Positions 3,800 to 30,050 of a stretch of DNA of 64,000 nucleotides are shown here, piece after piece. The notes under the pieces are model-generated. The model was not told the origin of the DNA. It saw only the letters and a program-made list of their open reading frames with translations, and did no database searches. Position numbers and translations under genes: made by a program. Numbering within the stretch: the stretch's first letter is position 1; every line of letters starts with the position of its first letter. The stretch comes from Iphione sp. A-MEVVRFRX5. Taxonomy: Eukaryota. The stretch is taken from positions 7,502,001 through 7,566,000 of the forward strand of contig OZ320317.1 in assembly GCA_976226885.1 (NCBI GenBank), written 5' to 3'.

Positions 3800-4445
3800 G
3801 TGTACACCAAGGCCCCTGAAACAACCACAGGAGCTGGATGGTGCATGGATGGAATCAATCAGAAAATACATGACGAAATTAATATGCCATTGATCACATT
3901 CATACCACATGGTTCCTTATGTAACCTATAGCCACATAGAGTGTTGCTGTACATAAGTTAGCTTGTACACCAAAGCCCCTGAAACAACCATGGGAGCTAG
4001 ATGGTGCATGGATGGAATCGATCAGGAAATACACATGACAAAAGTAATACGCCCTTGATCACATTCATACCACATGGTTCCTTATATAACCTAGAGCCAT
4101 ATAGAGTTGCTGTACATAAGTTAGCTTGTACATCAAGGCCCCTGAAACAAGCATGGGAGCTGGATGGTGCATGGATGGAATCAATCCGAAAATACATGAC
4201 GAAAGTAATATGCCCTTGATCACATTCATACCACATGGATCCTTAAATATAACCTATACCCATATAGAGTGTTGCTGTACATAAATTAGTTTGGACACCA
4301 AAGCCCCTGAAACAACCATGGGAGCTGGATGGTGCATGGATGGAATCAATCACATGACAAAAGTAATATGACATTGATCACATTCATACCACATGGACCC
4401 TTATGTAACCTAAAGTTACACAGAGTGTGGCTGTACACACATACG
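3800..4445. repeat. Tandem repeat of about 163 bp, 4 copies
   Basis: gcccctgaaacaacc...ggagctggatggtgcatggatggaatc...ttgatcacattcataccacatgg recurs at about 3812, 3975, 4138 and 4303. Confidence 0.85.
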
Positions 4446-6866: not shown

Positions 6867-9800
6867 TCACGAGCAGGCGCTGTCTGTGCCATTCTTATCC
6901 GCATCATCCTTCTCATCTTTACCCTCTGACTGGGTGGTCGAGTCAGTGCCACTCTCCATATTCTGAAAGAGAACATAGACAATAGGCATACACACAATGT
7001 ACACTACACATGTAAACAACATAGAAGGACTCTAACCTTTAATGGTCTTCACAACAGAAAGTGTTTTGTGAGCAGATCAAGAGACATGATGGAGACTATA
7101 CACTGAACAAGAAAACTCCGGTGCTATTCCTTTCAAAGCAAAAAGTGAAATTGTGCATTGGTGCATACATATAGAATTAGATTGTAAACATTCGTAAGTG
7201 CTACAGTTCGGTAGAGTATGTGTCTACCTTAGTATGTTATCTACGTATGACCAGTAACATATACTTCCGATAAAAAAAAAGTTGATTCATTTATCAGGTT
7301 CATTACAACACATTTATTGTTCTTTAACTCAACCATCGCTGGTCAAAGATACGCTTGAAATATCCAAAACATCCAACACAGCAAAATCTACAGTTGAAAG
7401 GAGAACTTAAAACTATGGTTTCGCTCAAGAAAAGAGAGAGCTGTTGATTTAAAGCTAAATACCTCTAGCTCTTTCATGATTTCATCCGTGAAATCTGTAG
7501 GATTATTTTTGTAGGCCAATGCCGCTCGGATCGCATCTCGGAAACACTGTTGTAGAAACGTGTCATGCTCATTGAGTATACTCAGCATAAATTGTCTATA
7601 TACACAGCATAATTTTCCCAAAATTCGTTTTCTATCGTTATCAAATGTCATCTCTCCTACTAAAGGATATCACAAGATTAAGATCAAATGTTGATTCATA
7701 ATAAGTAACAAGATTCTCATGGTACGTACCTTCACTACATTGGTACCATCCGAGGCCGAGACAAAGTAGAAAGGCATGTGGTTCTTTTTGGAAAAGCTAA
7801 AGCTCTTCTTAGTTACGCTATAGTCAACTGAAAAGAAAAGTTATAACATTAATCCAAGAAAACATTAGACACCTTGTGTCCGTTCCAGGTACTAAAGTCA
7901 TCGTTAAAGTTACGTCTGAAGACTAGACTAGAGCACCAGACATTTGTGACACAATCACAGATATCTTTAAGAAGCGGTACTACTCAGTGTTTCTAATACA
8001 CCGTATACCTTACAATAACTATGGCAGGTATTTATTGAGGCCTTTTATACATTCATATAAAAGAATACACGCTCCATGTACCTCTGGACCAAACCTGCTG
8101 AGTATCACTGGATTGATGACTGACCCTGCTCTTCTAAGAGGAGCAAGTTTCTGATCTTCATTCTTGTATTTTTGTAATTCTGCAAGACACAATGTGTCCT
8201 CACCTCACCCTCCATTCATCCCAAAAGACTAAAAACTGCTGGTGAGTCACATGACCCATGATAACCCACAGATCATCATGGGACAGAGAAAAAGTGAACA
8301 ACTGTTGAATACCAAATAAATGATACCTGCGAGCCACAACAGGCAAAACCCTGAACCCCATGCCACCTGTAGCGACAACAGTTACCAACCACACTAAGAA
8401 AAAACAGTAAAATAATGGACTGTCTGCCATATGCGGTTAGCAACAAATATTGTTGGGAAAGTAACCAGGGTGGTTGCCAGGATATCCATTAAGATACCCT
8501 CACAGAGCATGACTCACCCCAGCAATAACCCCACAGAGAATGACTCAGCATAGCGATACCCCGACAGAGCATGACTCAGCATAGCAATACCCCCGCGGTG
8601 TATGACTCACCATAGCAATACCCCCACAGAGCATGACTCAGCATAGCAATACCCCCGCGGTGTATGACTCACCATAGCAATACCCCAACAGAGCATGACT
8701 CAGCATAGCAATACCCCCGCGGTGTATGACTCAGCATAGCAATACCCCCCCGGAGCATGACTCAGCATAGCAATACCCCCCCGGAGCATGACTCAGCATA
8801 GCAATACCCCCATGGAGCAGGACTCAGTGTAGCAATACCCCGACAGAGCATGACTCACCATAGCAATACCCCCACAGAGCATGACTCAGCATAGCAATAC
8901 CCCCATGGAGCAGGACTCAGCATAGCAATACCCTCACAGAGCATGACTCAGCATAGCAATACCCCAACAGAGCATGACTCAGCATAGCAATACCCCCGCG
9001 GTGTATGACTCACCATAGCAATACCCCCACGGAGCATGACTCAGCATAGCAATACCCCCATGGAGCAGGACTCAGTGTAGCAATACCCTCACAGAGCATG
9101 ACTCAGCATAGCAATACCCCCCACAGAGCATGACTCAGCATAGCAATACCCCCGCAGTGTATGACTCACCATAGCAATACCCCCCACAGAGCATGACTCA
9201 GCATAGCAATACCCCCATGGAGCAGGACTAAGCACAGCAATACCCCCATGGAGCAGGACTCAGCATAGCAATACCCTCACAGAGCATGACTCACCATAGG
9301 AATACCCCCACAGAGCAGGACTCAGCGTAGCAATACCCCCACGGTGCATGACTTACCATAGCAATACCCCCACAGAGCATGACTCAGTGTAGCAATACCC
9401 CCACGGTGTATGACTCAGCGTAGCAATACCCCCACGGTGCATGACTTACCATAGCAATACCCCCCACAGAGCATGACTCAGCATAGCAATACCCCCATGG
9501 AGCAGGACTCAGCATAGCAATACCCTCACAGAGCATGACTCACCATAGCAATACCCCCACGGAGCATGACTCAGCATAGCAATACCCCCATGGAGCAGGA
9601 CTAAGCACAGCAATACCCCCATGGAGCAGGACTCAGCATAGCAATACCCTCACAGAGCATGACTCACCATAGGAATACCCCCACAGAGCATGACTCAGCG
9701 TAGCAATACCCCCACGGTGCATGACTTACCATAGCAATACCCCCACAGAGCATGACTCAGTGTAGCAATACCCCCACGGTGTATGACTCAGCGTAGCAAT

Positions 9801-12800
9801 ACCCCCACGGTGCATGACTTACCATAGCAATACCCCCCACAGAGCATGACTCAGCATAGCAATACCCCCATGGAGCAGGACTCAGCATAGCAATACCCTC
9901 ACAGAGCATGACTCACCATAGCAATACCCCCACGGAGCATGACTCAGCATAGCAATAATATGTCAACAGAAGCAATGACTTCACTTTTCAAGGTAGCACG
10001 CAATTGTCTGTTTGTTTCCAGCCATGTTTTATGACTCAGCTTCTGATCTCCTGCCGGTCTTCTTTAAGCAAAATGGAGCAATGCAATTCTGATCTGCTCC
10101 CGGTCAGACGCAGTGGAGATGAGAACAGCCACCTCACACCTCTCATAACAAGATTGTAGTCCCACGAGGTCTATTGTCCCCCGCCACTAAGTGCCCATTT
10201 CATGCTTGACTGCACCTCCCTTGGTCAAAGAGTGTGAGTGAGTGAGTGATTGAGTGTGTGTATGTGTGTATGTGCATGCATGTGTGTGTGTTAGCAAAAG
10301 AGTACATTGACATAATTTTATCTTTAGCATACTTGAATTACTACCAAAATTACCCAGTTCCATGGGTCCATGGACATAAGTATCATATATCAAAATTGGT
10401 TCATTTGACTGATGGGTTTTAGAGTTATAAGACCCACAAGAGTGGGATGGAAGGTAGGATGGTCAGACAGCACCATTCCTAAGGTCTCCCCATCCATGAG
10501 GTGGGGGACAATAGACCGATCGCCAGCCCCAAAAGAAACAGGTAGCGCGGATGTAATTTTTATGAATTATTATGTCATGGCGTGAATCCACCAATCAAAT
10601 AGCTTAAAATTGCAACAATGTCCTACTTACGTAAAAATTACGCCCACGCTTCCCGTTTCTTTCGTGGCTGGCGATCGGTCTATTACAAGACCAAGAACCC
10701 TACTGCAGCCAGAACATTTGAAACTGAGTATTAGAAAAAAAAGTCATACGTGTACTCTTCTTGACAACAGCAGAATAAAACTGTCCATTCACTGCACCTA
10801 CCATCTATTTTATTGGCAGCACATAAACACGGTATTTCTGGTCGATATTCGCGCAGCTCGGAGTACCACATGGGAAGATTTTTGTATGTTACCTTCCTAG
10901 TCACGTCAAAAACCTGGACAATAAGGAATACAACAGAATAATGTTTATCACTTAGATATTGTATTTTAGTAGAAGGATTTAAATGTATTCTTTACTCCAT
11001 AAATGGTATTACAAAACCTACAAAGCAATCATCGGATGATGCATGAGACAAAGTATTACTACTTATTAGGGACAGAGTAGGCAGAGCGATGTCATTGTTT
11101 GAGGGGGTGATTATTTGTACACTTAGTTTGAGGATAAACTCTGGCCATCTGGAACTTTAAAAAAAAAAGGGTTTCTTGGAGAACCCATAGCAAATGGAGA
11201 GTGGCGATTTTCCAAACTGCTGGTATCCACATACTTCACGACACACCCGTCTGCCTCACAGGCCATTTCACCGTGGAAGGGGGAATTAATGTGGTAAGGT
11301 CATTGTGAACACATACAGACTGGCAAGTTTCCTCGTTCGTCCAGGAATGATACTTACTAATATACAGGCATGTGCTTGATAGTAGTAGGAAGGGTGCATA
11401 CTCGAGAAACGTTCCTGTCCTGCAGTATCCCAGAAATCTGTAACCATCAATATATCGTTATAAACAGCTTTACTAATATCATACATGTATATATACATTA
11501 TAAATATAGTTATATAGAGAGCCCTTAAATCACGTCTATGCAATAAACAACATGTGATTTCATTGGCTATGACATGATATTTCCAAAAAGGAAACTAATA
11601 ATCTATAGATATGAATATAAATGTCATACATACTATTACATGATTATAATAATACATACATATATATATATATATATATTGTTTAATGAAACAAGGCTGT
11701 TATTGAGGGTTAGAATGCCTCCGGTCCAGAATGCTGCATGTTTCCCAGAGCAGAGGCTGAGTGGAGTAGGTTAAGGAAGGGGTGTATATAAGGTGGCATC
11801 CCATGGCGTCCATGTGTATGATAAGGTATGGGTGAAGGCCTACTCCATCCTAATGTCAGCTATACATAGCTTCATTGTGGAAGCTGTAGATTGAGGTTTT
11901 ATATGGTTACACTGGACTTAGATTTGAAGCTGTGGTACGAGGATCCTTGTCAAGCTGTCGCTGGTTAATTCAATAAGCAAAACATTTGCATCAAACTATA
12001 GAGGTGACTCCGAAGTCCGAACACTTGAAAACCAAACTTTCCCTAAACCGAACGATTTTTCTGGGAACCAACCATTTCCTATATATAGCTACTCAGATAT
12101 CTAAAATATTCAATTTCCGAATCTGAACTCTGTTATTTTGTTTAAATTAAGTTAAATTATATTAAAAAAACGAATGCTCTCCCCCAAGTTTATTATAAAT
12201 CAAAGGGAAGTGCTACTGTTTGATGAGCTGGCACCTCCTAGAGCTGACTGTGGGTTGTGACAACCTAAAGTAAGAGAACAAAGCGCAGAGCGTCTAACAT
12301 AGGTTAAAAGTCGTTTTTCGGCAGTTTCTCCATGGGATCTGCCACTATGCAAAATCCGAATTGTTGAATGTTCAGTTTTGGAATTCACTCTGTATATCCC
12401 TTTATAAGAAACATTTGTCAATGGATAGCCATAGCAAAAATATGGATTTCTGGGTGAATTCCCAGATAACTTAGCCTTGAGAGGAAAAGGGGCAGAATAC
12501 TATGTACGATATGGTAGCCCTGGGGTTCCATAGTTGCATATGAGTAACAAATTAAGGGATAAATGTCAACAGACATATGTATCTGAAACATGTACTAATT
12601 TAAGCATGTATGGGTATTGTGTTGATAAATGGTATCACTGAAATAAACTATCATAGACGCATATGTGTTGTGTATTTAGAAATGCATACTTACCCACTTG
12701 AACTTCTTGATCATCTATCGTTGTCTTGTATTTAAATAAAGTCAATGCATATGTAGACAATTGCTGTGGCTGGCTATCGAACGGTTAAGGAAAATGTATA

Positions 12801-16362: not shown

Positions 16363-17841
16363 ATGGGACAAACCTGGACTAACTTCGTCGTCGGGGACCT
16401 TGAGGACCAAGCTCATTCTTGGGATGAGATATGCGACTGTTACACAAGACTGCTGGCGACCGATGCCGCCTACTCGGCCATCATGCGTAAGGGCATTGTG
16501 GCCTTCCTGCGGCTGCGCATGGAGGAGACGGACAAACCGCAAGAAGTACGCCAAGCATTTCATGACCCCAGCTGGGTACAGTGGGTACGACTCTCTGGCA
16601 GTATAGCCGACGGTGGTGGTACATGCCGGTGGTTCCGTCACCGCCAGCCGGACTTTGAGATAGACATGCTCTATCAAGTAGGTATAATCAGCAGCGCCCA
16701 GCAGGATGCCATTGTGGTCTTCATGCCAGAGAAACCTGGCTATGTCCAGGTGAGGAAGCGCCCCGAGACCTACCTCTCGCTGCACCCGCTCTTACGCAGG
16801 GACCGTCCTGAGCTGAGCGAAGAATTCAACACTGAGGGCCCCAGGGAACAGTTTGTCAATACTCTAGACATGCAGAAACGTGTGGCCGAAGTATTTCCGC
16901 ATCGAGATGGGGATGGTGAGATCGACAGACTGAGTGCCGCGCTGATTGAGGTGAACGAGTCAGAGCTGCAGGTCTTCGCGAGTGAACTCATCAAAGGTCC
17001 CTCGTGCATGACAGAACTTGTGGTGTCTCTCAAGAATGACCCCAAGATTCTGTTCTCCTGTGATAGCGTGTTGGCCTTCAAGCTGGAGCGATGGCTTCCG
17101 CTGCTGGACCAGTGGCTCCATCGAGAGGGAAGACATTGGCCATCGGAAGTGATGATTACAAAGTGTTATGAAGAGCGCTGCCATATTGTGGCCAAGAAAT
17201 CTCCGACCGAAACAGTGATCAACACCGAGTGGCGGCTGTCTTTCTCCGCCATGGAGACCCTCCTCTTCAACTCTTTTAGCCAGGACCAGAAGGTATGCTA
17301 CTACTTCCTCAAGTCACTCTTCTACCGTCACCTGCGTGGTATTGAGGATGGGGAAGAGCAGCACCTCCAGTCTTATGCCATGAAGACGGAAATGTTCTGG
17401 ACCCTGGAACAGACGCCAGCTTCTGAGTGGGCAGAGGCTGACCTCTGCACCAACGCCCTTCGCGTGCTGACCAGATTGGACCAAGATTTGCACCGTGGCA
17501 CTATCCCTAACTATTTCCTCCCAACCATGAATCTTATCAACCCTGCAATTTATGATCGCTCGCTGATTAACCGCATTGCCGAGCATGTGCATCTCCTCTG
17601 TAATGACCTGGAAGCAGCTGTGCCGCAGGACCTGGAGAAGATGCTGCGACTTGGTGAGGCCATCATGTCTGTGCTGCGCTGTGTGCTCATCTACATTCAA
17701 GTGAAGATGGCCCAGGTCATTCAAAAGCGCCGAGAGGGTGCAGGTGCTCCACCACTGCCTCCCATGTTAGCTGCAATGCAGGCCTTCAACCTAGGACTGG
17801 ATGGACTATTCCAAAGTCTCCAGGGAGACCAACAGCAGTGA
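16363..17841 (+). CDS. Mab-21-domain cGAS-like receptor (cGLR) nucleotidyltransferase, 492 aa, intronless
   Basis: SGSIADG...DFEIDML (GS plus ExD), a third acidic residue in CDSVLAF, and Mab-21 motifs WP...CHIVAK, EWRLSFSAME, LQSYAMKTEMFW and IPNYFLPTMNLI. Confidence 0.92.
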   Translation: MGQTWTNFVVGDLEDQAHSWDEICDCYTRLLATDAAYSAIMRKGIVAFLRLRMEETDKPQEVRQAFHDPSWVQWVRLSGSIADGGGTCRWFRHRQPDFEIDMLYQVGIISSAQQDAIVVFMPEKPGYVQVRKRPETYLSLHPLLRRDRPELSEEFNTEGPREQFVNTLDMQKRVAEVFPHRDGDGEIDRLSAALIEVNESELQVFASELIKGPSCMTELVVSLKNDPKILFSCDSVLAFKLERWLPLLDQWLHREGRHWPSEVMITKCYEERCHIVAKKSPTETVINTEWRLSFSAMETLLFNSFSQDQKVCYYFLKSLFYRHLRGIEDGEEQHLQSYAMKTEMFWTLEQTPASEWAEADLCTNALRVLTRLDQDLHRGTIPNYFLPTMNLINPAIYDRSLINRIAEHVHLLCNDLEAAVPQDLEKMLRLGEAIMSVLRCVLIYIQVKMAQVIQKRREGAGAPPLPPMLAAMQAFNLGLDGLFQSLQGDQQQ

Positions 17842-18767: not shown

Positions 18768-19467
18768 ATGTTAAACAAAGGTAACCATGGTTTCGAGAAA
18801 CAAGTGATTTCATACAGCAAATGGTCTGATGCTGATCTGTGTGACATGCACAACAAACTAATAAGAGGGGAAGGTATCCTAGATACAGTTGGGGATCATA
18901 AGGCCAAGTGGGAGTCCTTCGAAAATTCCATTCGTAACTATCTGGAAGAAACCTGTATGCAGAAAACTGTTGTGGTAAAGAAAGAGATGGATTTGTTCCA
19001 AGTCAGCACTCTGAAAGAGATGATCATGGATAGAAAATATTCCTTTCGTAAATGGAAAAACACTGGCGCTATTGACAGTAGAAGAATTTTCAAGTTCTTA
19101 AAAAGGTTAGGATTGTCCTGATGTTTGAACGTCACTCCTATTGGTGCAGTTGCTTTTCTGAGGTAGAGGGGGGAAACAAAAGCAAGTTGGGGTCTACTGA
19201 ACAAAGCCCGAGGTAGTAAATCTGTAAGCAACAAACTCCCAACTAACCCCCCCGCTGGTACTTGTAGCCTGGCCTCTGCTTTTAATAAGTATTTCCTGGA
19301 AGAAGTCTCAAGGTTACTAAGTGATCTGGATCAACTGGGTATAGGCCCGATGAGCAGGAATCTCATCCATAGCTATGTAACTGACCGAATTCAAAGTGTT
19401 GTCTGCAAAGGGGTGGGGTCTTCTTATCTAAGTATGGAGTCCCTCAAGGTTCCATCATGGGACCTAG
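18768..19467 (+). mobile_element. CR1/L2/Jockey-like LINE, 5' part of the RT gene (interrupted by the Gypsy element)
   Basis: Post-endonuclease linker (KWESFENSIRNYLEETC...DRKYSFRKWK), then LIHSYVTDRIQSV and GVPQGSIMGP directly before the LTR. Confidence 0.8.
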
Positions 19468-20355
19468 TGTGGGGACGCCCTTCTTCCTATCGGTCGGCCT
19501 CACAGTGGTGGGGCGCATCGCAGTCACCGTGGGTCCTCTGTGGGGTGCTAGGCCACACCGGCGGTTGAATGCTGAAGGTCCCACCTTCTCTACTTACACT
19601 TACATAATAATGGGGGTTTCCCCAATAACTTCACACAACAAGTTAGTGCATTTCAGGCGAGCCTCAGTCCTTGGTCTTTCTGTCTCGTCTCTGGTTCAGC
19701 AGCCACTCGCGTCGGTACGTCTGGGAGACCCTCTCTCCGAAGTGTCTGTCCAGTGTCAGTCTGCTCTCTTTTTATTGCGATTTTGCTCATTACATAAAGA
19801 TCACACCACTACTTATTATTCATCATGCCATATTGTCATTGGTTCACAAACATCGGATGACCATGAGTTGATACACCAAGCTCCGCCCTCATACCACATT
19901 GCTGTCGTTTCACAATCATCGGATGACCATGGGCTGACACATCACATTTTGTACCAGGATACAATTTCGTGTCATGCTGAACTAATCGGTACTCCCCTCG
20001 TTATGTTATCAATACTGGGCCTAAACTTTCGATGAACCCCCTCTTTATGCTGGTCAAACCCTCGTATCCTGTTTCTGATATGTAGCTCTGCCCCTCCAAC
20101 GATTGTTCACTGATTACCCTTGATTATGACGGATTGGTCTATAATTATCTAAGCCGCTGGTCGAACCCTCGTATCCTGTTTCTGATGTGTAGCTCTGCTC
20201 CTCCAATGATTGTTCATTGATTATGATTGCCCTTGATTATGACGGATCAGTCTATAATTATCTAAGCCTGCCTATGTGGGTATGATCGGCTACCTTAAAC
20301 TCTATACATACATTTCTTACCATAAAACTCAATATTCTAGTCCCCATACTTTACA
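19468..20355 (-). repeat. 3' LTR (888 bp)
   Basis: Differs from the other LTR by about 6 substitutions and 2 small indels (by-eye alignment). Internal ~110-bp direct repeat in U3; AATAAA on the minus strand near 19780. Confidence 0.97.
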
Positions 20356-20366
20356 TACCCCCCCCA
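20356..20366 (-). other. Polypurine tract (GGGGGGGGGTA) abutting the 3' LTR
   Basis: The plus strand reads aca|tacccccccccc immediately inside the LTR. Confidence 0.85.
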
Positions 20367-20403
20367 CTTAAGATTTTGGAATCGGTATTCCAATATCTAC
20401 AAC

Positions 20404-21261
20404 CTATTCTCGAGGTGGCGGCGGAATTGTTGCCCCCTGGGGTATGCCCTCGGCTCCGCGGCGTTCAGACCGTATAGCTTCTCTTCTGGGCGTTTCTCGG
20501 GTTAGCACGTGGTGGACGCTTAGGCTGACACGAGGAGTCATAGTGCCATCATCCTCAAACATGGCGTCGCATTTAGGACATCCATCCCAAGCATCTACCA
20601 CGCTCCAGAAACATCGCCCATGTATTATCGCACCACAGCATGGCATGCGGCTTGCCTGCCCAACATGCCACCCGGAGTTTTGCACATACACTATTTCTTT
20701 TCTACAGATACAGCACACTGTGGTCTCATGCCTGTTTTTGTAGAGCCTACTTCGTTCAACACTCCGCAGTACCGATCGAATCTTACTTTTCGAGAATGCC
20801 CTATGGGCTTGATGATTTTTGATCTTTTGGATAAGGTTCTCCACCGAGTACCTTGCGTGTGCTGCTAGTAGACTAAGGGTAAGGGAGCCGCGAGGACTCT
20901 CCGTACCATATAGCTCGAGGACTTCTCCCAGGAAGTCATGGGCCTGCGTTGGTTGGTGGGTTATGCCATACTCCAATAAGTGTTCGAACAATTTATCGCA
21001 TGCAAAATAGTTAAGGAACTCTACGTACTTGCTAGCTTGGGAGTCCCACATGCGAGCCCATATTCTCGCCGTCACCTCTTGATCGCTAGTATCTGATCCC
21101 AATATCTCTAGGGCCTTGGTGTACTCTCCTTCATCTAATATTGGGGGTAACTCACAGATACTCGTTTCCTCGATGTTATCATAATGCAGCAAGGCTTCGA
21201 AGTACTTACTTCGTTGCGCTAACTGCTGGACATCAGTCTTACCCAATTTTACTTCCCCCAT
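20404..21261 (-). CDS. Accessory ORF4 of the Gypsy element: putative BTB/POZ-like N-terminus plus RING-type zinc finger, 285 aa
   Basis: Intact ORF with a strong Kozak context (atcATGG). BTB-like LAQRSKYFEALL...ELPPILDEGEYTKALEIL...FLNYFACDKLFEHLLEY. Zinc-ligand string CCIC-x22-CCGAIIHGRC-x10-CPKC. Confidence 0.75.
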   Translation of the reverse strand: MGEVKLGKTDVQQLAQRSKYFEALLHYDNIEETSICELPPILDEGEYTKALEILGSDTSDQEVTARIWARMWDSQASKYVEFLNYFACDKLFEHLLEYGITHQPTQAHDFLGEVLELYGTESPRGSLTLSLLAAHARYSVENLIQKIKNHQAHRAFSKSKIRSVLRSVERSRLYKNRHETTVCCICRKEIVYVQNSGWHVGQASRMPCCGAIIHGRCFWSVVDAWDGCPKCDAMFEDDGTMTPRVSLSVHHVLTRETPRREAIRSERRGAEGIPQGATIPPPPRE

Positions 21262-21619
21262 GATATATGATACTTAACTAAATTGGTTACACACAGGTTA
21301 AACTAAAAAAAAAAGAATGAGTAAATACCGTTATGGATACACTTGCTGCAGTGTGCTAACAACAATAGGAGGACAACCACTAGTTGTATATAACACGTCA
21401 CAGACTTAACCCAAAACAATCAATAGACAGTGAGATCAACAACCCTCAACTCGTAGTGGTAATACACTAGGCTTGTGCGGTTTTGAATTGAATAGGCGCT
21501 ATCCTATTCTTCACGGGGATGAACCTGTAACCTCCCAATAGTGCATCCAGACACAATGTACTACAGGTAACTGAATAGGCGCTATCCTATTCTTCGCGGG
21601 GATGTAAAACTAGTTACAC

Positions 21620-23808
21620 CTACCAAACATGCGTGCGGGACATGTCCTCGTCCCCATCTTCTGACATCAAATACTCACTGGGGATAACACCTACTGTTGA
21701 TACACTTCCGCTCTTAGGTGGTAGCGGGATCGGCAAGCTACCTTTACCTTTGGATTCGGACAGCAGGGAGACTTGCGTGGATCGGACGGAATCTTCTCGT
21801 GAGACTGTGCTACACCCAGTTTTAGGGGTAGGAGGCAAGGGTCTCTTTACTCCTGAAGCGGCCAGATCCCGGAGTTCCATTGTAGACCTTTGCCTGCCTA
21901 CTACCCGTCCAACTGGCTTAGTCCATTGACTTGTTAACCATCGTTTCTTCTTACATACACAACATAACACAATCGCGGTCAGAACACCTAGGATGGAAAA
22001 ACTTGAGCCCACGGAAGAGCCTATTATTAACTTTTTCTTTTCAAATGTTGGTGGTTTTACCCATAATGCCTGCGGGTCCCCGGCTTTTAACGTGAGCGGT
22101 GCATGCTCCACGAGCCTTTTTACCTTTTTGAAGTCCTTCAACTGTTCAATTTTGAAGCCAAATCAATGGTTTCCGCAGGTTTCGTTTCCTCAACATTATC
22201 TAATGCAATCTGTCGAATATACTCCCCAGCAACCCGCCATGAATCTGCTTCCGCTAGGCACCCAGGCCCTAGTTGGAGGATTCTTATTCTTCCGATCTTC
22301 TCACGTTTTTCCTGTTGACCCAAGCAATGTATAGAAAACTCTGAACCATTTCTTCCAGATAGTAAGTATGTGTTCCGTCTTAATTTATAGGCCACATTGG
22401 CCCGAGGGTCCGAAAATAGCCTAATTGTACAAGCTTTTAATTTCTCCTGTTGTCCAATAATAATACCCGTCACACATTGCTCATGTTGGTGGTGGACCGC
22501 CGGTGGGCAAACCACGGGTCGGTCCCCATAACACTCTGAGATACTGATTATCCCTCCCCTCCTGGTGTTCCAACCTACCTGTGCTGGAATATCCACAGTT
22601 TCCCGCCAGACATTCTTTGTACCGGTGTACACAGGTACGCTCCTGATAGTATACAATATGTATTCCTCATTGTTAACGGTGGGAACGGCTGCCCTGTATA
22701 CAAATTCGTTTTGTTTCATCCATAAAAGTTCTACCCCCACATTTCTGTAATACCAATGTAATGGGAGGGAGTGCGATGTCAGTTCCCCCTCCTGTCGTGC
22801 CAAAATGTCACTCAGTTGTTCAGGGGTAAGAAGGTCGGCCGTCAACCATCCGCGATCGAGTGCGCGCTGTTGATCAACGAATAGTCCATGGCGGTCCTTC
22901 CAGTCCCTATAAATGACTTCTAATTCATTCAACACCCTATCCACATCCTGCATAATTTCTAACTGAGTTATTCGCTGTATACCTGCCGCCAACCTATTTT
23001 GCAACTCCGAGGCTGCTTTCTCTAATGTTCGTATATGTTTTTCATCTATCCTCATCTGGTAACCCTGCTGGTTAACAGTAGCTATTGTCTTATTTACCAG
23101 AGTCACCAGTTCATTGTGCGAGTGCACCAGTTCCTCTTGCGTTGTCCTCAGTACGTCCACGGTTTTCTGCAAGTCCTGTACCTCTGCCTCAGTTGCCGTC
23201 CCAAACAACCAGTTACTCAGTCGGCCTACCCCGTCGACCACGCCACGTTTCTGCCGAGTAACTGTACGGGGGTGACCAGACAAGGCGTCCCTCATCTGAT
23301 CCACCCGATCGGTCCACATCTGGTGGGTTCGGTTTGATGCTTTACCCCGCATGTGCTCGAGGTAAACTTGCACCAAACTAATCGCCTTCTGCACATCTGT
23401 TGGCATGGGCCTCTGAATTGCTACCAGAACAGTCCATGTCCCTACAACTTCTCGCCCGGCTCCTGTCTATGTTACCAGGACGCCGTCCTCTTCTAATAAC
23501 GACGCCGTACTGAATACGGCGGCACAGAGCATGAACACCGTCCTACACAGTAGACGCATGGTCGTTTGTTGGTCGGTTGCGTCTTCTTGGCCTCCCGTGT
23601 TGGTTGCCGAACGCTTCCTCAGAACAACTGGTTCGGTCTCGATCTGCTCTAGCCCTGCGTTTTCTGTGAACGTTGGTCCACGTTGTCTCTTTGCTGTCGC
23701 GCTGTCACTGTCAGGGGCGAGTGGTTCCCCGCTCCTTTTATGGCCTCCGCGTCGGGGTGGTGGCAGAGTCCAATCAGGGTCGTCTTCGTAGCGGCCAATG
23801 GGTCTCAT
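21620..23808 (-). pseudogene. env: env: baculovirus-F/errantivirus-like fusion glycoprotein, disrupted by one TAG (23467-23469) and one frameshift (about 22140)
   Basis: Signal-like MRLLCRTVFMLCAAVFSTA; furin site RQKR followed by fusion peptide GVVDGVGRLSNWLFGTA; heptad repeats; Cys-rich ectodomain; TM LIIGSSVGSSFSILGVLTAIVLCCVC-KKKR. ORFs 23467..23877 and 22138..23406 are in the same frame. Confidence 0.88.
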
Positions 23809-26800
23809 TTTAGCTGCGCGTGGCAGATAAGTCCTCCCCTTGGCTTGACGGGTGGTAGCGGTGATGGGACGTCCCAAACGAGGTCCCTCGGGATGATCCG
23901 AACTTGTGACTGGTTAACCGTTTTAATAACCCCCGACTTCTGATGACGGCAGCGTATGACCGGCCCCTGAACCCGGATAACTTCGAACTCTGGGTTCCAC
24001 TTAGGATCGAACTGTGCCTCCCGGTTATTGCGCAACACGACCGTGTCCCCTGGTTGAACTTCCTGTCGTGTAGCACGTGCTTCCAGCCGTCTCTGGTTGA
24101 ACTCTCGTGACTCCTGCGTACGTCGTGCCGCATCCTGGAGTGCCCTTGCCAAGGCGCCCAACCGATCGCTCACTATTGTAGGGTCCTGACCTTCCACGCG
24201 TCGCAACATTGACGTCACCGGGATCTTTGGTCTTCTCCCATACATCAGGAAAAATGGTGTGTAGCCTGTCACTACTGAGGTGGAAATACGGTGAGCTAGA
24301 AGGGCGTTTCCCAGCTCATCTTCCCACCGACTGATGCACCCGTTCACCAACTTTCTGATCAGTTGCTTAAGTGTACGATGAAACCTCTCAACACGACCAT
24401 TACTCTGCGGATGATAGGGTGTCGTTCGCCGATGCTCAATATCCATCTGTTTCATGTAGCTGCCCAGTGCTTCGCCATTGAACTCACCTCCTTGGTCAGT
24501 GATGATCACTTCTGGAGTCCCATACCGTGGAATGAACTCCCTCTCAAGGAAGTTCAAGACGTTCTGCTCCCCCTTGGTTGGTATGGGTTTAGCCTCCACC
24601 CAACCAGTACAATGGTCAATGACAGTTAATATGTACCGGTTACCTTCTGAAGAAACCTCGAATGGGCCTGTCAGGTCCATTCCTAAGATCTGCATCGGGT
24701 ACGTGGCTATGGGCATCTCACCTGGGCGGGCGTGTTGTTGGGTGTCCCTATGCATTGCACATTTGGTGCACTTTGCTAACGTCGTCTTGACATCTCGTCT
24801 CATGCGCGGCCACTTATATGCCTCCTTAATGCGCCATAAGGTCTTGTTCACTCCCTGATGCCCGACTTCCGTATGGGCACGCCGGATGACTCTCCATCGG
24901 TGCGAAGGCGGTAGAACCAGTCTTGGGTAGGGTGCAGCGCCGCTTTCTTCTGTGATGTCGTACAAGAGTCCTCCTGTCAAGACGTATTGTTCATCATCTC
25001 CGTCTTTTGCTTTCTCATACTCTTCCATGGTTGCTTGTTCTTCCCGCAACTGGTCCATGTCCAAGCCGTCTGTGTCCCAGGGTATGGGCGTGTCATCTTC
25101 TGTTGCTTCCTGCGGGCTGGCCCATGGCATTGCGGGATCAAAGATGCACACTTCAGGTGGCGCCCTGATTCGGCTGAGCATATCGGCACGTATGTTGTGT
25201 GATCCTTGTCTGTATTCTATAGGGGCTCCATATTCTTCGAGTAGCACGGCCCATCTCTGGATCCGAGTGTTAGCTACCTCTTGCAGAAATAGGGATTTCA
25301 GTGGTTTATGGTCGGTCAGGATGGTAAACTTAGCCCCATACAGATATGGTTGTAGTTTCTTCAAACAGTAGATCACCGCCCATGCTTCCTTCTGGATCAC
25401 TGCCCACTTCTTCTGTCGGTCATCTAACTTCTTAGACACGTACTGCACCACTCGCTCCACCCCCTTCACTTCCTGTACCAGGATGCCACCAATCGCATAG
25501 TCACAGGCATCCGTGTACAGCTTGTACGGTTGACTGGGGTCAGGGATGGTCATGACATGAGAGCTAGTCAGGGCTAGCTTCAGTTGATCGAACGATCGTT
25601 GGTGTCGGTCAGTCCACTCCCACTTCTTATTCTTCTTTGTCAGTTCGGTGAGGGGTGTAGCAATCGCAGCAAAGTTCTCTACACACTGTCTGTAATAGCC
25701 GGCCATCCCCAGAAAGCTCCGTACTACTTTCACACTTTCAGGCCTACCCAAGTCGCGGATAGCGGTCACCTTGTCGGGGTCTGACTGGATACCGTCTTGT
25801 GACACTACGTACCCCAACAGCTTCACCTCCCTGGCATCGAACGTACACTTGGATGGTTTCAGTTTGATGCCAGCTTCAATCAGGCGCTCCAATACAGCTC
25901 GGGTGTTCTGCTCGTGTTCTTCATCGGATTCAGAGTAGATTACTATGTCATCCAGGTACACCATCACACAACGTCCGATAAGATCACGGAGCACTTCTTG
26001 CATCAGTCTCTGAAAAACAGCCGGGGCGTTGCACAACCCAAATGGCATCACCAGGAACTCAAATAGACCTCTATGGGTCACAAACGCTGTCTTCTCGATT
26101 GATTCGGTGCTCATCGGTACCTGCCAGTATCCACTTTTCAGATCCAACGTTGTAAGCTTGGTACTGCCACCCAGCTGGTCGAAAATGTCTTGCACCAAAG
26201 GTAGCGGATGACTATCTTTGACGGTGATGGAATTCAGTCTGCGATAGTCAACACAGAACCTTGTGGATCCGTCCTTCTTTGGTACCAGGGTGATTGGAGA
26301 CGCCCACGGTGACTTGGACGGTCGAATCACCCCATCTGTCAGCATCTTGTCGAGCTCTTCCTCAACAAGTCTTCTTTTGTACAAGGGCATCCTATAGGCC
26401 CTAAGACGGAAGGGTCCCTGATCTGCGGTATCACTAGAACAGGTGGTCTTGACTCGCCCCAGAGGCTCTGACTCGTTAGCAAACACCTCGGGGTATTCTG
26501 TCGCCCACCGTGTGTCCCCGATGACACACGCCACTGGAACTCCCTTTGTCGTCCGGAAAGGATAGTCCTTGTCCGCTATAGTCATGGTTCGTTGATCATA
26601 GTTGATGATCCCTCCTCCATCCCTGAGGTAATCATCCCCTACAATAACTTCATGGGGTAGTCCCCTGACTACCACGGCAGTTAACGTCCTCCCTCCATCT
26701 ACGGGCAATGCCACCTTTCCCAGCACGTGAAGGTGGTGCCCCGAAACACTGCACAATGCGGGTGAAGCAGAGAGCATCGGTTGACGATGGACTCTGCTAC

Positions 26801-26930
26801 AGACGAAACGAAAATGTTTTTCACTCACCAGTGAACAGGACGCTCCCGTGTCGACCAAAGCCACCGTGTTGACCCCGTGGATGGATAGACGGATGGTCGG
26901 TCGCTCTGGCAACACGGTGCTTAGTTTCCC
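23805..26930 (-). CDS. pol: pol polyprotein (protease-RT-RNase H-integrase), Gypsy order
   Basis: LVDTGAS (protease), YLDDIVIYS (RT), LYTDACDYAIGGIL (RNase H), HTEVGHQG...CTKC (HHCC), MDLTGPF...ITDQGGEF...NGRVER (DDE). Open for more than 1036 codons. Confidence 0.97.
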   Translation of the reverse strand, partial: GKLSTVLPERPTIRLSIHGVNTVALVDTGASCSLVSEKHFRFVCSRVHRQPMLSASPALCSVSGHHLHVLGKVALPVDGGRTLTAVVVRGLPHEVIVGDDYLRDGGGIINYDQRTMTIADKDYPFRTTKGVPVACVIGDTRWATEYPEVFANESEPLGRVKTTCSSDTADQGPFRLRAYRMPLYKRRLVEEELDKMLTDGVIRPSKSPWASPITLVPKKDGSTRFCVDYRRLNSITVKDSHPLPLVQDIFDQLGGSTKLTTLDLKSGYWQVPMSTESIEKTAFVTHRGLFEFLVMPFGLCNAPAVFQRLMQEVLRDLIGRCVMVYLDDIVIYSESDEEHEQNTRAVLERLIEAGIKLKPSKCTFDAREVKLLGYVVSQDGIQSDPDKVTAIRDLGRPESVKVVRSFLGMAGYYRQCVENFAAIATPLTELTKKNKKWEWTDRHQRSFDQLKLALTSSHVMTIPDPSQPYKLYTDACDYAIGGILVQEVKGVERVVQYVSKKLDDRQKKWAVIQKEAWAVIYCLKKLQPYLYGAKFTILTDHKPLKSLFLQEVANTRIQRWAVLLEEYGAPIEYRQGSHNIRADMLSRIRAPPEVCIFDPAMPWASPQEATEDDTPIPWDTDGLDMDQLREEQATMEEYEKAKDGDDEQYVLTGGLLYDITEESGAAPYPRLVLPPSHRWRVIRRAHTEVGHQGVNKTLWRIKEAYKWPRMRRDVKTTLAKCTKCAMHRDTQQHARPGEMPIATYPMQILGMDLTGPFEVSSEGNRYILTVIDHCTGWVEAKPIPTKGEQNVLNFLEREFIPRYGTPEVIITDQGGEFNGEALGSYMKQMDIEHRRTTPYHPQSNGRVERFHRTLKQLIRKLVNGCISRWEDELGNALLAHRISTSVVTGYTPFFLMYGRRPKIPVTSMLRRVEGQDPTIVSDRLGALARALQDAARRTQESREFNQRRLEARATRQEVQPGDTVVLRNNREAQFDPKWNPEFEVIRVQGPVIRCRHQKSGVIKTVNQSQVRIIPRDLVWDVPSPLPPVKPRGGLICHAQLK

Positions 26931-27891
26931 TGATGTTCTTGTCGGGCTTCAGCTACTTGGTTCCTCATTCCTCCACTGCACTCCCTTCCGATGTGGCCCA
27001 GACGTCCACATCGAAGACAGTAGGGGGTACCGTCTTCACTCCATCGTCTCCGATCAGCCTGCGGTCGCGTGGCCCTAGGCTGGTCAACCGGGATTGGCTG
27101 TCGTGGTGGTGGTACTGGCTCTTTCTCCTTTCTACTAAGCTTCGTTACTTGCTTTTGCAACCCCCTCACCTGCCTCTGTAGCTCCTCCATAACCTCGACT
27201 ACTGACTTTCCATCTTTTGTCTGTCTTCCCGCATCGAAGGCATTGACGTCCATTGGTTCGTTCCTTACCTTGTCTTGCGTGGTGGCCCATGGCGCCCCAT
27301 TTCATCTTTAGCCAGGGCAATAGAGCGTGCCACGTCTCCTGCTTGAGCCATGGCTATTTGTACGGTAGTCGGCCGGGTCAGATATACCCTCTCCATAATG
27401 CTTCTGTCGTTTATACCTTGGATGTAAAACCGAACCAGTCTCTCCTTCGTTAGCTGCTCCTTCAATTGCTCTGGCGTGTAGGCTTGATTCATGGCCTCAA
27501 GAAAGCCCTGTCCATATTCCCTTACCGACTCGTAGGGCCGTTGCCTCATCTTCTCTAACTCGTTTCTTCTGTATTCCATTTCATCTTCTTCAAGGAATGT
27601 GGTTACCATGTGTTCTTTGACCTGTTCCCAGGTTCCAGTCCTTCCTGGCTGTGAAGCCAGGAACGTCTGGATGCTAGACCGGAGTGTCCCCTTTGTCAGG
27701 TAGCCCAATATCGGAACCAGCAATTTGTCCTCGATAACTAGCCATTGCTTGATCGAATCTAAGTCATCGAGGAGCCTCCTTACTTCGTCCCTAGACTTCC
27801 CATCGCATGGGGTCATTCGTTTCGTGTATTCTCGGATGTGAGCTTGTATTTGTGGGGCCTCGGCCTTGTCTTTTACTTGCGCCTGTGCCAT
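26921..27891 (-). CDS. gag: gag (capsid-like domain plus CCHC zinc knuckle), split by a single-base frameshift near 27290
   Basis: The 208-aa ORF (TWEQVKEHMVTTF...RQRPYESVREY...RFYIQGI) continues in the -1 frame to EPMDVN...CLRCGRLGHIGREC. Confidence 0.85.
26924..26930 (-). promoter_or_regulatory. -1 ribosomal frameshift slippery site G GGA AAC at the gag/pol junction
   Basis: Gag ends CAG GGA AAC TAA, and pol is open in the -1 frame across the heptamer with no ATG of its own. Confidence 0.85.
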
Positions 27892-28129
27892 GGTTACTAC
27901 TTTCTTTTCCTTCCCCTTCTCCTTTCTTCTCTTCTTCTACAATAGCTGCTTTCCTCTTCTCTTCCCTCTTCTATCTTCTACGGCAATTTCTTTTCCTCTT
28001 CTATCTCATATGGTTCGACTTAATTCACTTACTTGTCACTCATCAGTGGCCCTTTTTGTGCCTCGTTTGTGGGTCTGGAAGATGTCTCTTCCTTTGGGTG
28101 CTCGTGTTCCTCTCACCAGGTCGCATCAG

Positions 28130-28147
28130 ATCCCATCCTCGTCGCCA
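28130..28147 (-). other. Primer-binding site complementary to the 3' end of tRNA-Ser(GCU)
   Basis: The plus strand reads ATCCCATCCTCGTCGCCA (18 nt, ending in CCA), 4 nt from the 5' LTR. This matches the 3' end of metazoan tRNA-Ser-GCT as I recall it. Confidence 0.85.
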
Positions 28148-28151
28148 AATC

Positions 28152-29043
28152 TGTGGGGACGCCCTTCTTCCTATCGGTCGGCCTCACAGTGGTGGGGCGC
28201 ATCGTAGTCACCGTGGGTCCTCTGTGGGGGGGCTAGGCCACACCGGCGGTTGAATGCTGAAGGTCCCACCTTCTCTACTTACACTTACATAATAATGGGG
28301 GTTTCCCCAATAACTTCACACAACAAGTTAGTGCATTACAGGCGAGCCTCAGTCCTTGGTCTTTCTGTCTTGTCTCTGGTTCAGCAGCCACTCGCGTCGG
28401 TACGTCTGGGAGACCCTCTCTCCGAAGTGTCTGTCCAGTGTCAGTCTGCTCTCTTTTTATTGCGATTTTGCTCATTACATAAAGATCACACCACTACTTA
28501 TTATTCATCATGACATATTGTCATTGGTTCACAAACATCGGATGACCATGAGTTGATACACCAAGCTCCGCCCTCATACCACATTGCTGTCGTTTCACAA
28601 TCATCGGATGACCATGGGCTGACACATCACATTTTGTACCAGGATACAATTTCGTCGTGTCATGCTGAACTAATCGGTACTCCCCTCGTTATGTTATCAA
28701 TACTGGGCCTAAACTTTCAATGAACCCCCTCTTTATGCTGGTCAAACCCTCGTATCCTGTTTCTGATATGTAGCTCTGCCCCTCCAACGATTGTTCACTG
28801 ATTACCCTTGATTATGACGGATTGGTCTATAATTATCTAAGCCGCTGGTCGAACCCTCGTATCCTGTTTCTGATGTGTAGCTCTGCTCCTCCAATGATTG
28901 TTCATTGATTATGATTGCCCTTGATTATGACGGATCAGTCTATAATTATCTAAGCCTGCCTATGTGGGTATGATCGGCTACCTTAAACTCTATACATACA
29001 TTTCTTACCATAAAACTCAATATTCTAGTCCCCATACTTTACA
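28152..29043 (-). repeat. 5' LTR (892 bp)
   Basis: Near-identical to 19468-20355; bounded by the PBS and the CTAG TSD. Confidence 0.97.
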
Positions 29044-30050
29044 CTAGCGCGTTCTCCATTGGCATTGACATCATCTGAGTTTTTCCATCCGGGTGTTTCC
29101 CCATTCTCTATGCTGATGACCTTACAGTATATGCTGAAAATATCTTCCAACTCAGGGATATTGCAATAAGTGTACTCAATAAGGTATCCCAGTGGTGCAG
29201 TGAGACAGGGCTGTTATTGAGTAAAGACAAATTTTTGTACATAACCATAGGCAAGACTTTCGGATTCAATCTTGATCTTATCATAGGCAGTGATCAACTT
29301 TGTAGGGTCCCTTGTGCAAAAATCTTTTGATACCATATCTCATCTGATCTGGGTCCAGTTTACACTTTGAGGTATCTAAAGAGAGCCCTTTTGACTGCAA
29401 GCCTCAGGATTGGTAGAACTAAAGAACTATTGCCAGTAAGTGCAAAGAAGATTTTATTTTCTTCCTTGGTACTGACTCATCTAAACTACCACTCGATATT
29501 GTTATTTGACATGTCAAAGAGCCAGAGATCAAGGGTCCAATCTCTCCTGAATAGGTGTGCTTGAGTCTGTTTTCAGACTGGTGACTGCATTCCAGCATGG
29601 CTGCTAGCTGAAAGGTTCTCCGTACCTGACATATCCTCATCGGTTTACAACAGAGGTACAAAAGTAATTGGCAAACTATTAAATCTGGGTCTTATCCCTA
29701 CTGCCACAACAACGAAAACTCAATCAGGTTCTGTTGTTTGAGGTGGTGTTCCAAATCCTAAAAGTAGTAAGTTCAGGCACATTCTGTGTTTTAAAACAGT
29801 TGTACAGTGGAATCTCAAATTGCTCAGTAAAACGTAACTTGTTGGGTTTGACTTGTGATGCTGATTATTATATTTCATAGAAGAATTACTTTTCATCTTT
29901 TGTGTCATGTTTATCCCACATGTTTCTTCCATTTCTATGGATATCGTCTCTCAATGTGCTAAATATTTCTGGGAACAGCTGTCTGTCTCAATACTTCTTT
30001 ATGTACTATTTACTCACTGAAGTGTCACATGTGTAATGTTAATAAATTTT
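29044..30050 (+). mobile_element. LINE, 3' part of the RT gene (continuation of 18768-19467)
   Basis: SAFSIGIDII, ILYADDLTVYA and KILFSSLVLTHLNYHS follow the TSD. Stops are present; aataaa near 30040. Confidence 0.85.

Follow-up and report, generated by a model that had tools for sequence, protein, structure and literature searches.

In the conflict between vertebrate retroviruses and their hosts, a central role falls to accessory genes by which host ubiquitin ligases are redirected. To our knowledge, nothing comparable has been described in the much older env-bearing Ty3/gypsy elements of invertebrates. An env-bearing Ty3/gypsy element within the 64,000 nucleotides of DNA analysed here (the window) carries a fourth open reading frame, which we call ORF4, and the locus raises the question of what this additional gene is and what its protein might do.

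The element spans 9576 bp (19468..29043, minus strand) and is bounded at both sides by a 4-bp target duplication, CTAG (19464-19467 and 29044-29047). The 5′ LTR of 892 bp (28152..29043, minus strand), which carries internal tandem duplications of ~110 and 56 bp, and the 3′ LTR of 888 bp (19468..20355, minus strand) are 98.9% identical over 892 alignment columns, and both have TG..CA ends. Direct reading of the sequence places a PBS-like sequence that begins with TGG 4 nt past the 5′ LTR (28130..28147, minus strand); a search of the 64-kb window for tRNA genes found none. The polypurine tract, AAGTGGGGGGGGTA, adjoins the 3′ LTR (20356..20369, minus strand). The LTRs, the target-site duplication, the PBS and the polypurine tract, together with the PR-RT-RNaseH-IN order of pol, agree with a Ty3/gypsy element. 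The ratio of observed to expected CpG is 0.74-0.82 within the element and 0.2-0.55 in the flanking DNA, and this higher internal value fits a young insertion. The retroelement is a young endogenous retrovirus, an env-carrying Ty3/gypsy member in an animal genome that is depleted of CpG. A Mab-21 gene is its host neighbour.

The gag gene (26921..27891, minus strand), which contains one frame change, encodes a Retrotrans_gag/Ty3 capsid (PF03732, 9.5e-11) and a CCHC zinc knuckle (zf-CCHC, 1.9e-3). It is followed by an uninterrupted pol of 1036 aa (23805..26915, minus strand) that encodes protease, reverse transcriptase (RVT_1, 3.4e-38), RNase H (RT_RNaseH, 1.4e-34) and integrase, the last with both its H2C2 portion (Integrase_H2C2, 1e-15) and its core (rve, 2.7e-13). 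The env-like region of ~750 codons (21620..23877, minus strand) is interrupted by a single in-frame stop and a single frame change. Its likeness is to class I or F-type fusion proteins, as judged by a Pfam match to Baculo_F (1.3e-5) whose 24.5 bits are barely over the 24.1-bit cut-off, a match to the heptad region model CoV_S2 (2.9e-4), and 'fusion protein' chains among solved structures (E = 0.05). The metazoan 'ancient errantiviruses' of the Metaviridae share with this element the LTRs, the 4-bp duplication, a CCHC gag, a PR-RT-RH-IN pol and, behind pol, an env-like gene of the F type (PMC13524379). Those elements are described as having gag, pol and env only, with no mention of an ORF that is accessory, encodes a RING or is related to ubiquitin (PMC13524379), whereas the present element has a fourth gene, which is placed after env and ahead of the polypurine tract.

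ORF4 runs from ATG to stop over 285 codons (20404..21261, minus strand) and is oriented like gag, pol and the env-like region. The original prediction, which named no strand, had placed a 285-codon frame at exactly these coordinates, downstream of env and ahead of the polypurine tract and 3′ LTR. Its stop lies 48 nt from the 3′ LTR, with the G-rich polypurine tract immediately downstream, and the remaining five frames of the interval 20404-21261 each contain 6-23 stops. When the stretch from the end of env to the LTR was shuffled 2000 times, the longest ORF had a mean length of 74 codons and a maximum of 232. The original prediction had also drawn attention to ORF4 being intact where gag and env are damaged. 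The breaks in gag and env were indeed counted, but three breaks in ~7.2 kb of coding sequence correspond to only 0.36 expected in ORF4, and therefore its intactness beside damaged neighbours carries no statistical weight. We rejected an argument for selection on this basis, as an intact ORF4 is expected by chance (P ~0.7); the intact state of the single copy is no evidence of selection.

We also considered whether ORF4 might be a separate nested insertion. Repeats flanking it on both sides were looked for and none was found, and its base composition and CpG content are like those of gag, pol and env and unlike those of the flanks. A nested insertion was ruled out for these two reasons.

Features of the surrounding DNA suggest how ORF4 could be expressed. 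The T-rich spacer between env and ORF4 (21262..21619, minus strand) contains two 36-bp direct repeats (21486-21521 and 21569-21604) and, 41 nt upstream of the ORF4 ATG, a polypyrimidine tract with a terminal AG (21303-21320, minus strand) that may function as a splice acceptor. In the leader upstream of gag, direct reading reveals a splice-donor-like site, CAA/GTAAGT, with the putative cut after CAA (28027..28035, minus strand). A spliced subgenomic RNA, which joins the GTAAGT donor-like site in the leader to the polypyrimidine-AG, would then serve as the ORF4 message. A gene downstream of pol or env with a probable spliced message is also a property of other LTR retrotransposons with extra ORFs, such as those carrying the ORF3 types of bdelloid rotifers (PMC5408684), and the same is reported for plant aORFs (PMC7264820) and for CERV of Cer1 (PMC10309623). 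The products described for such ORFs are GDSL lipase, DEDDy exonuclease, dUTPase, coiled-coil/TM proteins and an RNA-export factor (PMC5408684, PMC7264820, PMC10309623). The terms RING, BTB and ubiquitin do not occur in PMC5408684.

An exhaustive HMMER search of 1.84 billion representatives recovered 26 true relatives of ORF4, which are divergent, stand-alone proteins of 148-358 aa with identities of 21-39% and E values from 5e-41 (best) to 7.7e-4. ORF4 is not a one-off. With ORF4 included, the family alignment holds 27 sequences, and the mean pairwise identity is 16-27% for every region. A protein of 1373 aa with 12 matched stretches (P0017) proved to be an SdrD-repeat protein and was discarded as a spurious relative. 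In a word-index protein search, ORF4 and the N-terminal domain alone each gave 0 matches and the family alignment gave one member; because the exhaustive HMMER search recovered the family, these blanks reflect low sensitivity at 20-39% identity. An NCBIfam scan of ORF4 gave no match, and cluster look-ups of the relatives returned neither protein names nor accessions. The ORF4 family was previously unannotated in public databases.

The nature of these relatives bears on the possibility that ORF4 is a passenger, that is, a gene of the host or of another mobile element that was recently captured by one lineage or copy and has no role in the element. Capture of extra ORFs is known, and some ORF types are common to unrelated retroelement classes (PMC5408684). 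Codon usage offers no help in judging this possibility, since ORF4, when its RSCU is set against that of gag, pol, env or the host gene nearby, shows correlations of ~0 throughout, which are uninformative at these lengths. However, the 1.84 billion representatives searched contain no cellular relative that is longer or has several domains. None of the relatives has a protein name, and most derive from raw assemblies and not from annotated proteomes, a situation that would be unusual in a host gene family. Several are also multicopy, with one sequence present on 6 contigs and truncated copies residing on eukaryotic contigs of 0.4-2.3 Mb. Since ORF4 in addition shares the composition and CpG content of the element and lies exactly in the gap that separates env from the polypurine tract, without bracketing repeats, we regard a passenger as quite improbable. 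The evidence supports ORF4 as a real and conserved gene, the fourth in this env-bearing Ty3/gypsy element, and its relatives may be carried by retroelements as well. The zinc ligands conserved across the family, described below, and the multicopy relatives lend indirect support to the view that ORF4 may be a stable accessory gene of a retroelement lineage.

The ORF4 product is a soluble protein of ~33 kDa without a membrane domain. AlphaFold applied to the single sequence gave a useless model (pLDDT 42.5), and therefore only the AF2 model built from the family alignment was used (pLDDT 92.9, pTM 0.78). The protein can be divided into a BTB-core-like portion (residues 1-88), a helical extension resembling a 3-box/BACK (89-150), a linker helix (158-176), a RING-type C4HC3 finger (178-236), and a further helix (256-270) that is followed by a proline-rich tail.

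The finger is the best conserved portion of the protein in the 27-row alignment. Its eight ligands (C183, C186, C208, C209, H214, C217, C228 and C231) are retained in 26-27 of the 27 rows and form the pattern C-x2-C...CC...H-x2-C...C-x2-C, a C4HC3 set in cross-brace order. When compared with solved structures, the family profile matched the RING domains of Hrd1 (1e-5), Pirh2 (4e-4), gp78/AMFR (6e-3) and RNF165/Arkadia (0.04-0.3); only RING domains were matched, with no PHD finger at E<=10. Models of RING domains are likewise the commonest weak Pfam matches across the family, none of them at the gathering score (best E 0.036), and when the two halves of ORF4 were scanned separately, the C-terminal half gave sub-threshold RING matches only. 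The finger region is modelled with a pLDDT of 90-97, and Foldseek pairs the ORF4 model with the NMR structure of the Hrd1 RING (probability 0.98, target-normalised TM 0.57) and with the TRAF6 RING (probability 0.80). A RING-like character of the C-terminal half is therefore well supported by profile comparison and by the predicted structure.

The best profile and fold matches to residues 178-245, Hrd1/synoviolin, gp78/AMFR and Pirh2/RCHY1, are RING-H2 ligases, with which ORF4 shares a cross-brace ligand order in which the fifth ligand is His and the sixth is Cys. ORF4 differs from RING-H2 in lacking the fourth-ligand His, whose position holds a non-ligand residue, and in having a conserved extra Cys just before the third ligand, which creates a CC dyad, and its lack of a membrane domain also sets it apart from this group of ligases. 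Canonical RINGs have the spacing C-x1-3-H-x2-3-C/H-x2-C at ligands 3-4-5-6. This spacing is absent from ORF4, which has CC-x4-H-x2-C with ligands 3 and 4 adjacent. RING E3s often have Arg or Lys directly behind the last ligand, and they have a Pro after the seventh. Neither residue is conserved at these positions across the ORF4 family.

The poor conservation of these features, which are usual in E2-binding RINGs, would suit a protein whose finger serves as a structural or a reader module, for example a PHD, rather than as a ligase, and whose N-terminal domain serves oligomerisation only. ORF4 might then bind chromatin, nucleic acid or a host factor, in roles such as countering silencing, guiding integration or exporting RNA. 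The C4HC3 order and the PHD-like gap, in which 4 residues separate the histidine from the fourth ligand, are in keeping with this reading, as are the match of two family members to PHD_ash2p_like (2.5e-4) and weak matches to further PHD models. Non-enzymatic accessory proteins also exist in LTR elements, CERV of Cer1 being a reported example (PMC10309623). The restriction of structural profile matches to RING domains speaks against a reader module, as do the predominance of RING among the Pfam matches and the identity of the zinc-finger fold matches, which are the Hrd1 and TRAF6 RINGs. Taken as a whole, a reader module of this sort appears unlikely, and we favour a RING derivation of the finger.

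In the N-terminal part of the model the elements are E2-5, H11-17, H19-27, E35-38, H44-54, H60-73 and H76-85. Their order agrees with that of the BTB core fold, B1/B2/A1/A2/B3, A3, A4/A5 (PMC1257465), with B2 not called. For residues 1 to ~170, the closest folds in the PDB are the SPOP BTB, the Cul3-bound BTB-BACK protein A55 of vaccinia, KBTBD2 and KLHL11, and the best viral neighbours, from BFVD, are kelch-like proteins of poxviruses and BTB proteins of giant viruses. All BTB fold matches in both collections are weak (E 0.02-0.5, TM 0.25-0.39, rmsd 6-10 Å). With a threshold as loose as E<=10, PF00651 and related BTB models matched none of the 27 family members. Nor was any solved BTB chain matched by the family profile or by residues 1-175 alone. 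Such an absence does not exclude the fold, because identity between BTB families is <10% (PMC1257465). ORF4 and the BTB-BACK adaptors have, in the model, the same order of core elements followed by a helical extension; they differ in that no sequence relationship is detectable and TM stays <0.4, and in that ORF4 carries a RING-like finger in place of a MATH or Kelch substrate domain. We consider a BTB domain in the N-terminal half plausible on the basis of the model. Thus, of the two domains originally predicted, the C-terminal C4HC3/RING variant is supported by its ligands and by its profile and fold matches to Hrd1. For the BTB domain, the quoted motifs are present and the core order and top BTB-BACK neighbours agree, but the matches are weak and lack the backing of any sequence model.

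The same fold neighbours are Cul3 adaptors composed of BTB and 3-box/BACK, and they include the complex of vaccinia A55 with Cul3. This raises the alternative that ORF4 engages Cul3, as a binder or a decoy, much like poxvirus BTB-BACK proteins, with a finger that is substrate-binding or auxiliary rather than catalytic. Residues 89-150 of the model occupy the location of the 3-box and BACK helices (PMC3597819). Given that the BTB likeness is weak and without sequence-model support, and that the finger is the most conserved feature of the protein and resembles catalytic RINGs, we view this alternative as improbable.

Proteins with RING domains are also encoded by other viruses, among them the IE0/EXON0/PE38-type proteins of baculoviruses, the wsv222-like proteins of nimaviruses and ICP0 of herpesviruses. 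Some RING proteins of large DNA viruses occur among the weak BFVD fold matches of ORF4 (probability 0.15-0.47), and none has a sequence match to it. ICP0, Vif and Vpu were absent from the matches of all sequence and fold searches with ORF4; their likeness to it is one of proposed role only.

We propose that ORF4 is an accessory gene whose product combines a RING-H2-derived C4HC3 finger with a BTB-like domain and acts as a RING E3 or a RING-bearing Cul3 adaptor, a proposal that we hold with confidence and doubt in equal measure. In the most likely model, the protein would be a RING E3 ligase that is self-contained and dimeric, or else a Cul3 adaptor that bears a RING. Its C-terminal finger would most likely recruit a ubiquitin-conjugating enzyme, and the BTB-like and helical domain would most likely serve oligomerisation, the binding of a host partner (Cul3 or the substrate), or both; ORF4 has no recognisable substrate-binding domain. 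The product would attach ubiquitin to a host protein that restrains the element, or perhaps to one of the element's own proteins. In this scheme, binding of E2 or Cul3, ligase activity and the target are what we infer for the protein. The broader notion that a whole lineage of invertebrate env-bearing Ty3/gypsy elements has, as a conserved fourth gene, a BTB-RING ligase that removes a host restraint factor is tentative and, in our judgement, somewhat doubtful.

Literature searches agree with the original statement that no BTB-RING accessory gene has been described in this group, and a BTB-then-RING architecture is not among the BTB families catalogued in PMC1257465. On a cautious reading, ORF4 still defines a new protein family that is structurally well predicted and without public annotation. 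If the proposed function is correct, the Metaviridae would gain in ORF4 their first accessory gene of the E3 type, and a single-chain BTB-RING architecture, uncatalogued among BTB proteins, would join the repertoire of the ubiquitin system. A conserved RING protein borne by such elements would mean that env-bearing Ty3/gypsy elements manipulate the turnover of host proteins, and would hint at the restriction or silencing pathways that these elements face.

The gene of interest here, ORF4, is carried by an LTR retroelement on the minus strand (19468-29043). Its LTRs are direct repeats at 19468-20355 and 28152-29043 that are 98.9% identical over 892 columns and, on the minus strand, both start with TG and finish with CA; the target duplication CTAG is present at both flanks. 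A TGG-initiated sequence resembling a primer-binding site comes next after the 5′ LTR; at the other end, a G-rich polypurine tract adjoins the 3′ LTR. In Pfam searches, gag was found to carry a Ty3-type capsid and a CCHC knuckle, and the uninterrupted 1036 aa pol to carry protease, reverse transcriptase, RNase H and integrase. Within the env-like gene, the largest piece matched the baculovirus F protein family barely over the family cut-off, with a second match to a coronavirus S2 heptad region, and the gene gave a weak match to solved 'fusion protein' chains. Because of the LTR pair, the primer-binding-like site and polypurine tract, the gag and pol domains, and the F-type env-like match, its sequence identifies the element as env-bearing Ty3/gypsy type, a kind that is now known to occur widely among metazoans (PMC13524379).

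The CpG observed/expected ratio of the element is 0.74-0.84 against 0.2-0.55 in the depleted flanks, and this contrast together with the LTR identity marks it as a young insertion. The host DNA (window 1-64000) has ratios of 0.18-0.58 in most 4-kb bins and an excess of TpG and CpA, which suggests a methylated animal genome. Both LTRs also contain an internal tandem duplication of approximately 107-113 bp that is 88% identical (20049-20268 in the 3′ LTR, 28737-28956 in the 5′ LTR) and a 56-bp pair that is 79% identical (19823-19944 and 28574-28629, respectively), which could be duplicated regulatory modules.

The original prediction placed an open reading frame at 20404-21261, and this observation was confirmed: ORF4 lies on the minus strand and extends for 285 codons from an ATG to a TAG. 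The five alternative frames of the interval contain 6 to 23 stops each, and when the 1264-nt stretch from the end of env to the LTR was shuffled 2000 times, the longest ORF had a mean length of 74 codons and did not exceed 232 in any shuffle. ORF4 has the orientation of gag, pol and env. It begins 358 nt past the env-like region and stops 48 nt short of the 3′ LTR, with the polypurine tract directly downstream. In base composition and CpG content it matches the element rather than the flanks, and a search for repeats bracketing the gene found none. That ORF4 is intact whereas gag and env are damaged holds as an observation, as there are no breaks in ORF4 or pol, one change of frame in gag, and one change of frame plus one in-frame stop in the env-like gene. 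However, at three breaks per approximately 7.2 kb of coding sequence, 0.36 breaks would be predicted for 858 nt, and even in the absence of selection ORF4 should therefore be intact in about 70% of cases. As an argument, intactness consequently carries no weight.

The spacer between env and ORF4 is T-rich, and a polypyrimidine run ending in AG is located 41 nt upstream of the ORF4 start codon with no ATG between. Because the leader also contains a donor-like site (CAA/GTAAGT) upstream of gag, it is plausible that ORF4 would be expressed from a spliced subgenomic RNA. Two 36-bp direct repeats that are 94% identical (21486-21521 and 21569-21604) also reside in this spacer.

A word-index protein search with ORF4 came back blank, whereas an exhaustive HMMER search against 1.84 billion cluster representatives gave 27 matches at E<=1e-3, the best at 5e-41 and 39% identity. 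One match of 1373 aa was rejected as spurious, being an SdrD-repeat protein. Each of the 26 true relatives is a stand-alone protein that aligns along its full length, sizes spanning 148-358 aa (mostly 270-330), and no longer, fused or multidomain relative was present among the representatives at this threshold. None has a name or accession; the source assemblies are those of ENA, Logan and JGI. In some clusters, multiple copies lie on large eukaryotic contigs: the four near-identical members of one cluster are on contigs of 0.58-2.2 Mb, and a second has eight members, with one sequence on six contigs and truncated copies on contigs of 0.4-2.3 Mb. This pattern is that expected of a gene carried by a repeated element, and is indirect evidence of such carriage. 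The existence of a conserved, unannotated family is solid.

Pairwise identity among the 27 sequences is low throughout the alignment, averaging 16-27% per region. The columns of C183, C186, C208, C209, H214, C217, C228 and C231 are conserved in 26 or 27 of the 27, the exceptions being two short members that are probably decayed. Other well-conserved columns include one Ser and one Tyr within the first helices, Leu-Pro at the second strand, Ser-x3-hydrophobic-x3-Leu-Arg-x3-Arg in the linker helix, and two Arg in the C-terminal helix. That last helix is family-wide and, in ORF4, belongs to residues 256-285 (20404-20496, minus strand), which finish with a proline-rich end of hydrophobic-P-P-P type. 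It is modelled at a pLDDT of approximately 94, as if packed against the protein body, and the helix and tail could serve as a latch within the molecule or as a short motif for binding.

The eight conserved ligands form the pattern C-x2-C-x21-CC-x4-H-x2-C-x10-C-x2-C, which is indeed the C4HC3 arrangement first proposed. Against solved structures, the family profile matched the RING-H2 domains of Hrd1 (1e-5), Pirh2/RCHY1 (4e-4) and gp78/AMFR (6e-3), with weaker matches to RNF165/Arkadia, RNF126 and EL5, and matched no other zinc fingers; ORF4 alone matched Hrd1 at 8e-4. In a Foldseek search of the PDB, the NMR structure of the Hrd1 RING was in the top five (probability 0.98, TM 0.57 by target), with the TRAF6 RING ranked after it. 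The predicted RING-like C-terminus is solid. Ligand 3 of RING-H2 domains aligns with the second Cys of the family's CC pair, but the ligand 4 His stands opposite a non-ligand residue, and therefore the extra Cys before ligand 3 probably replaces this His. RING models are the commonest weak Pfam matches among family members, none reaching its cut-off. Two members match a PHD model at 2.5e-4, and a minority alternative is that the finger is a PHD and ORF4 a PHD-like reader or regulator; the profile matches to solved RING-H2 domains and to no other zinc fingers speak against this. We conclude that the finger is a variant derived from RING-H2.

The N-terminus had been proposed to be a BTB domain, and here the sequence methods were uniformly blank: no Pfam BTB match was obtained for any of the 27 members at E<=10, and no BTB was recovered with the family profile against solved structures, nor when residues 1-175 on their own were compared with solved structures or the word index. 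The AlphaFold model computed from the family alignment is confident (mean pLDDT 92.9, pTM 0.78) and has a strand at 2-5, helices at 11-17 and 19-27, a strand at 35-38, helices at 44-54, 60-73 and 76-85, and four further helices reaching residue 147. This follows the order B1/(B2)/A1/A2/B3/A3/A4/A5 by which the core BTB fold is defined (Stogios et al., PMC1257465), although B2 is not called in the model. Approximately 30 of the first 35 PDB fold matches are BTB plus 3-box/BACK proteins, including SPOP, vaccinia A55 with Cul3, KBTBD2, KBTBD4 and KLHL11, with approximately 170 columns aligned. In a viral library, a kelch-like BTB protein from a poxvirus gives the best match (E 0.02, probability 0.97), and many BTB proteins of giant viruses and poxviruses come next. 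All of these BTB matches are weak (E 0.02-0.5, TM 0.25-0.39, rmsd 6-10 A). Identity between BTB families is below 10% (PMC1257465), and so the sequence blanks are compatible with a BTB fold. We modestly favour a BTB-like N-terminus, although it is not established. The original reading is partly supported: its RING-like half stands and its BTB half is plausible.

Metazoan env-bearing Ty3/gypsy elements have been treated as gag-pol-env in a paper that does not mention accessory, RING or ubiquitin-related ORFs (PMC13524379), whereas the present element also carries ORF4. Extra ORFs of rotifer LTR retrotransposons encode GDSL lipase, DEDDy exonuclease, dUTPase and TM/coiled-coil proteins (PMC5408684), and others are plant aORFs (PMC7264820) and CERV of Cer1 (PMC10309623); no RING or BTB protein is among them. 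Literature searches found no description of BTB or RING accessory genes in errantiviruses or retrotransposons, in agreement with the initial statement that none was known in this group. Likewise, a BTB followed by a RING is absent from the catalogue of BTB architectures that Stogios et al. compiled (PMC1257465). The suggested analogy to ICP0, Vif and Vpu extends to the proposed role only, as none of these matched in any search.

Elsewhere in the window, an intronless 492-aa ORF (16363-17841, plus strand), 1.6 kb from the 3′ LTR, carries Mab-21 nucleotidyltransferase and C-terminal domains and has 'cGAS-like receptor 1' as its best solved relative (4.6e-14); it is likely to be a host innate-immune sensor gene. 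Other mobile elements are represented by a KDZ (Kyakuja-Dileera-Zisupton) transposase domain in a 365-aa ORF (43807-44904, minus) and a GIY-YIG nuclease domain, possibly Penelope-like, in a 255-aa ORF (46831-47598, plus). Together with the Mab-21 gene, these two ORFs indicate that the host is an animal. A 31-bp unit is repeated 47 times with 85% matches at 8494-9957 and is strongly asymmetric between strands (GC skew -0.26, AT skew +0.30), and further minisatellites reside at 1-430 (42 bp x10), 3801-4437 (163 bp x4), 42141-42641 (42/209 bp) and 56832-57216 (29/84 bp). Stretches within 56-64 kb are, like the element, not CpG-depleted (0.73-0.79), and the 62-64 kb stretch, given its GC content of 0.50 and marked skews, may be another young insertion. 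ORFs of 191-302 aa without a Pfam match are located at 60606-61430 (minus), 61577-62152 (minus), 63348-63968 (plus) and 41453-42361 (minus).

Certain positions of RING E3s often contact the E2. These are poorly conserved in the family, which, with the unusual CC dyad, speaks against a classical catalytic RING. Further alternatives are that ORF4 is a decoy for Cul3 like poxvirus A55, or a passenger gene without function. A scan of the ORF4 protein for a membrane span found no hydrophobic segment of sufficient length. In the best-supported reading, ORF4 would be a soluble accessory protein encoded by the element, in which the BTB-like module would provide self-association, a partner-binding surface or both, and the RING-type finger would recruit an E2. 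The analysis shows the domain likenesses; with activity, partners and targets that we infer, ORF4 would then act as a small E3 ligase or as a Cul3 adaptor that bears a RING.
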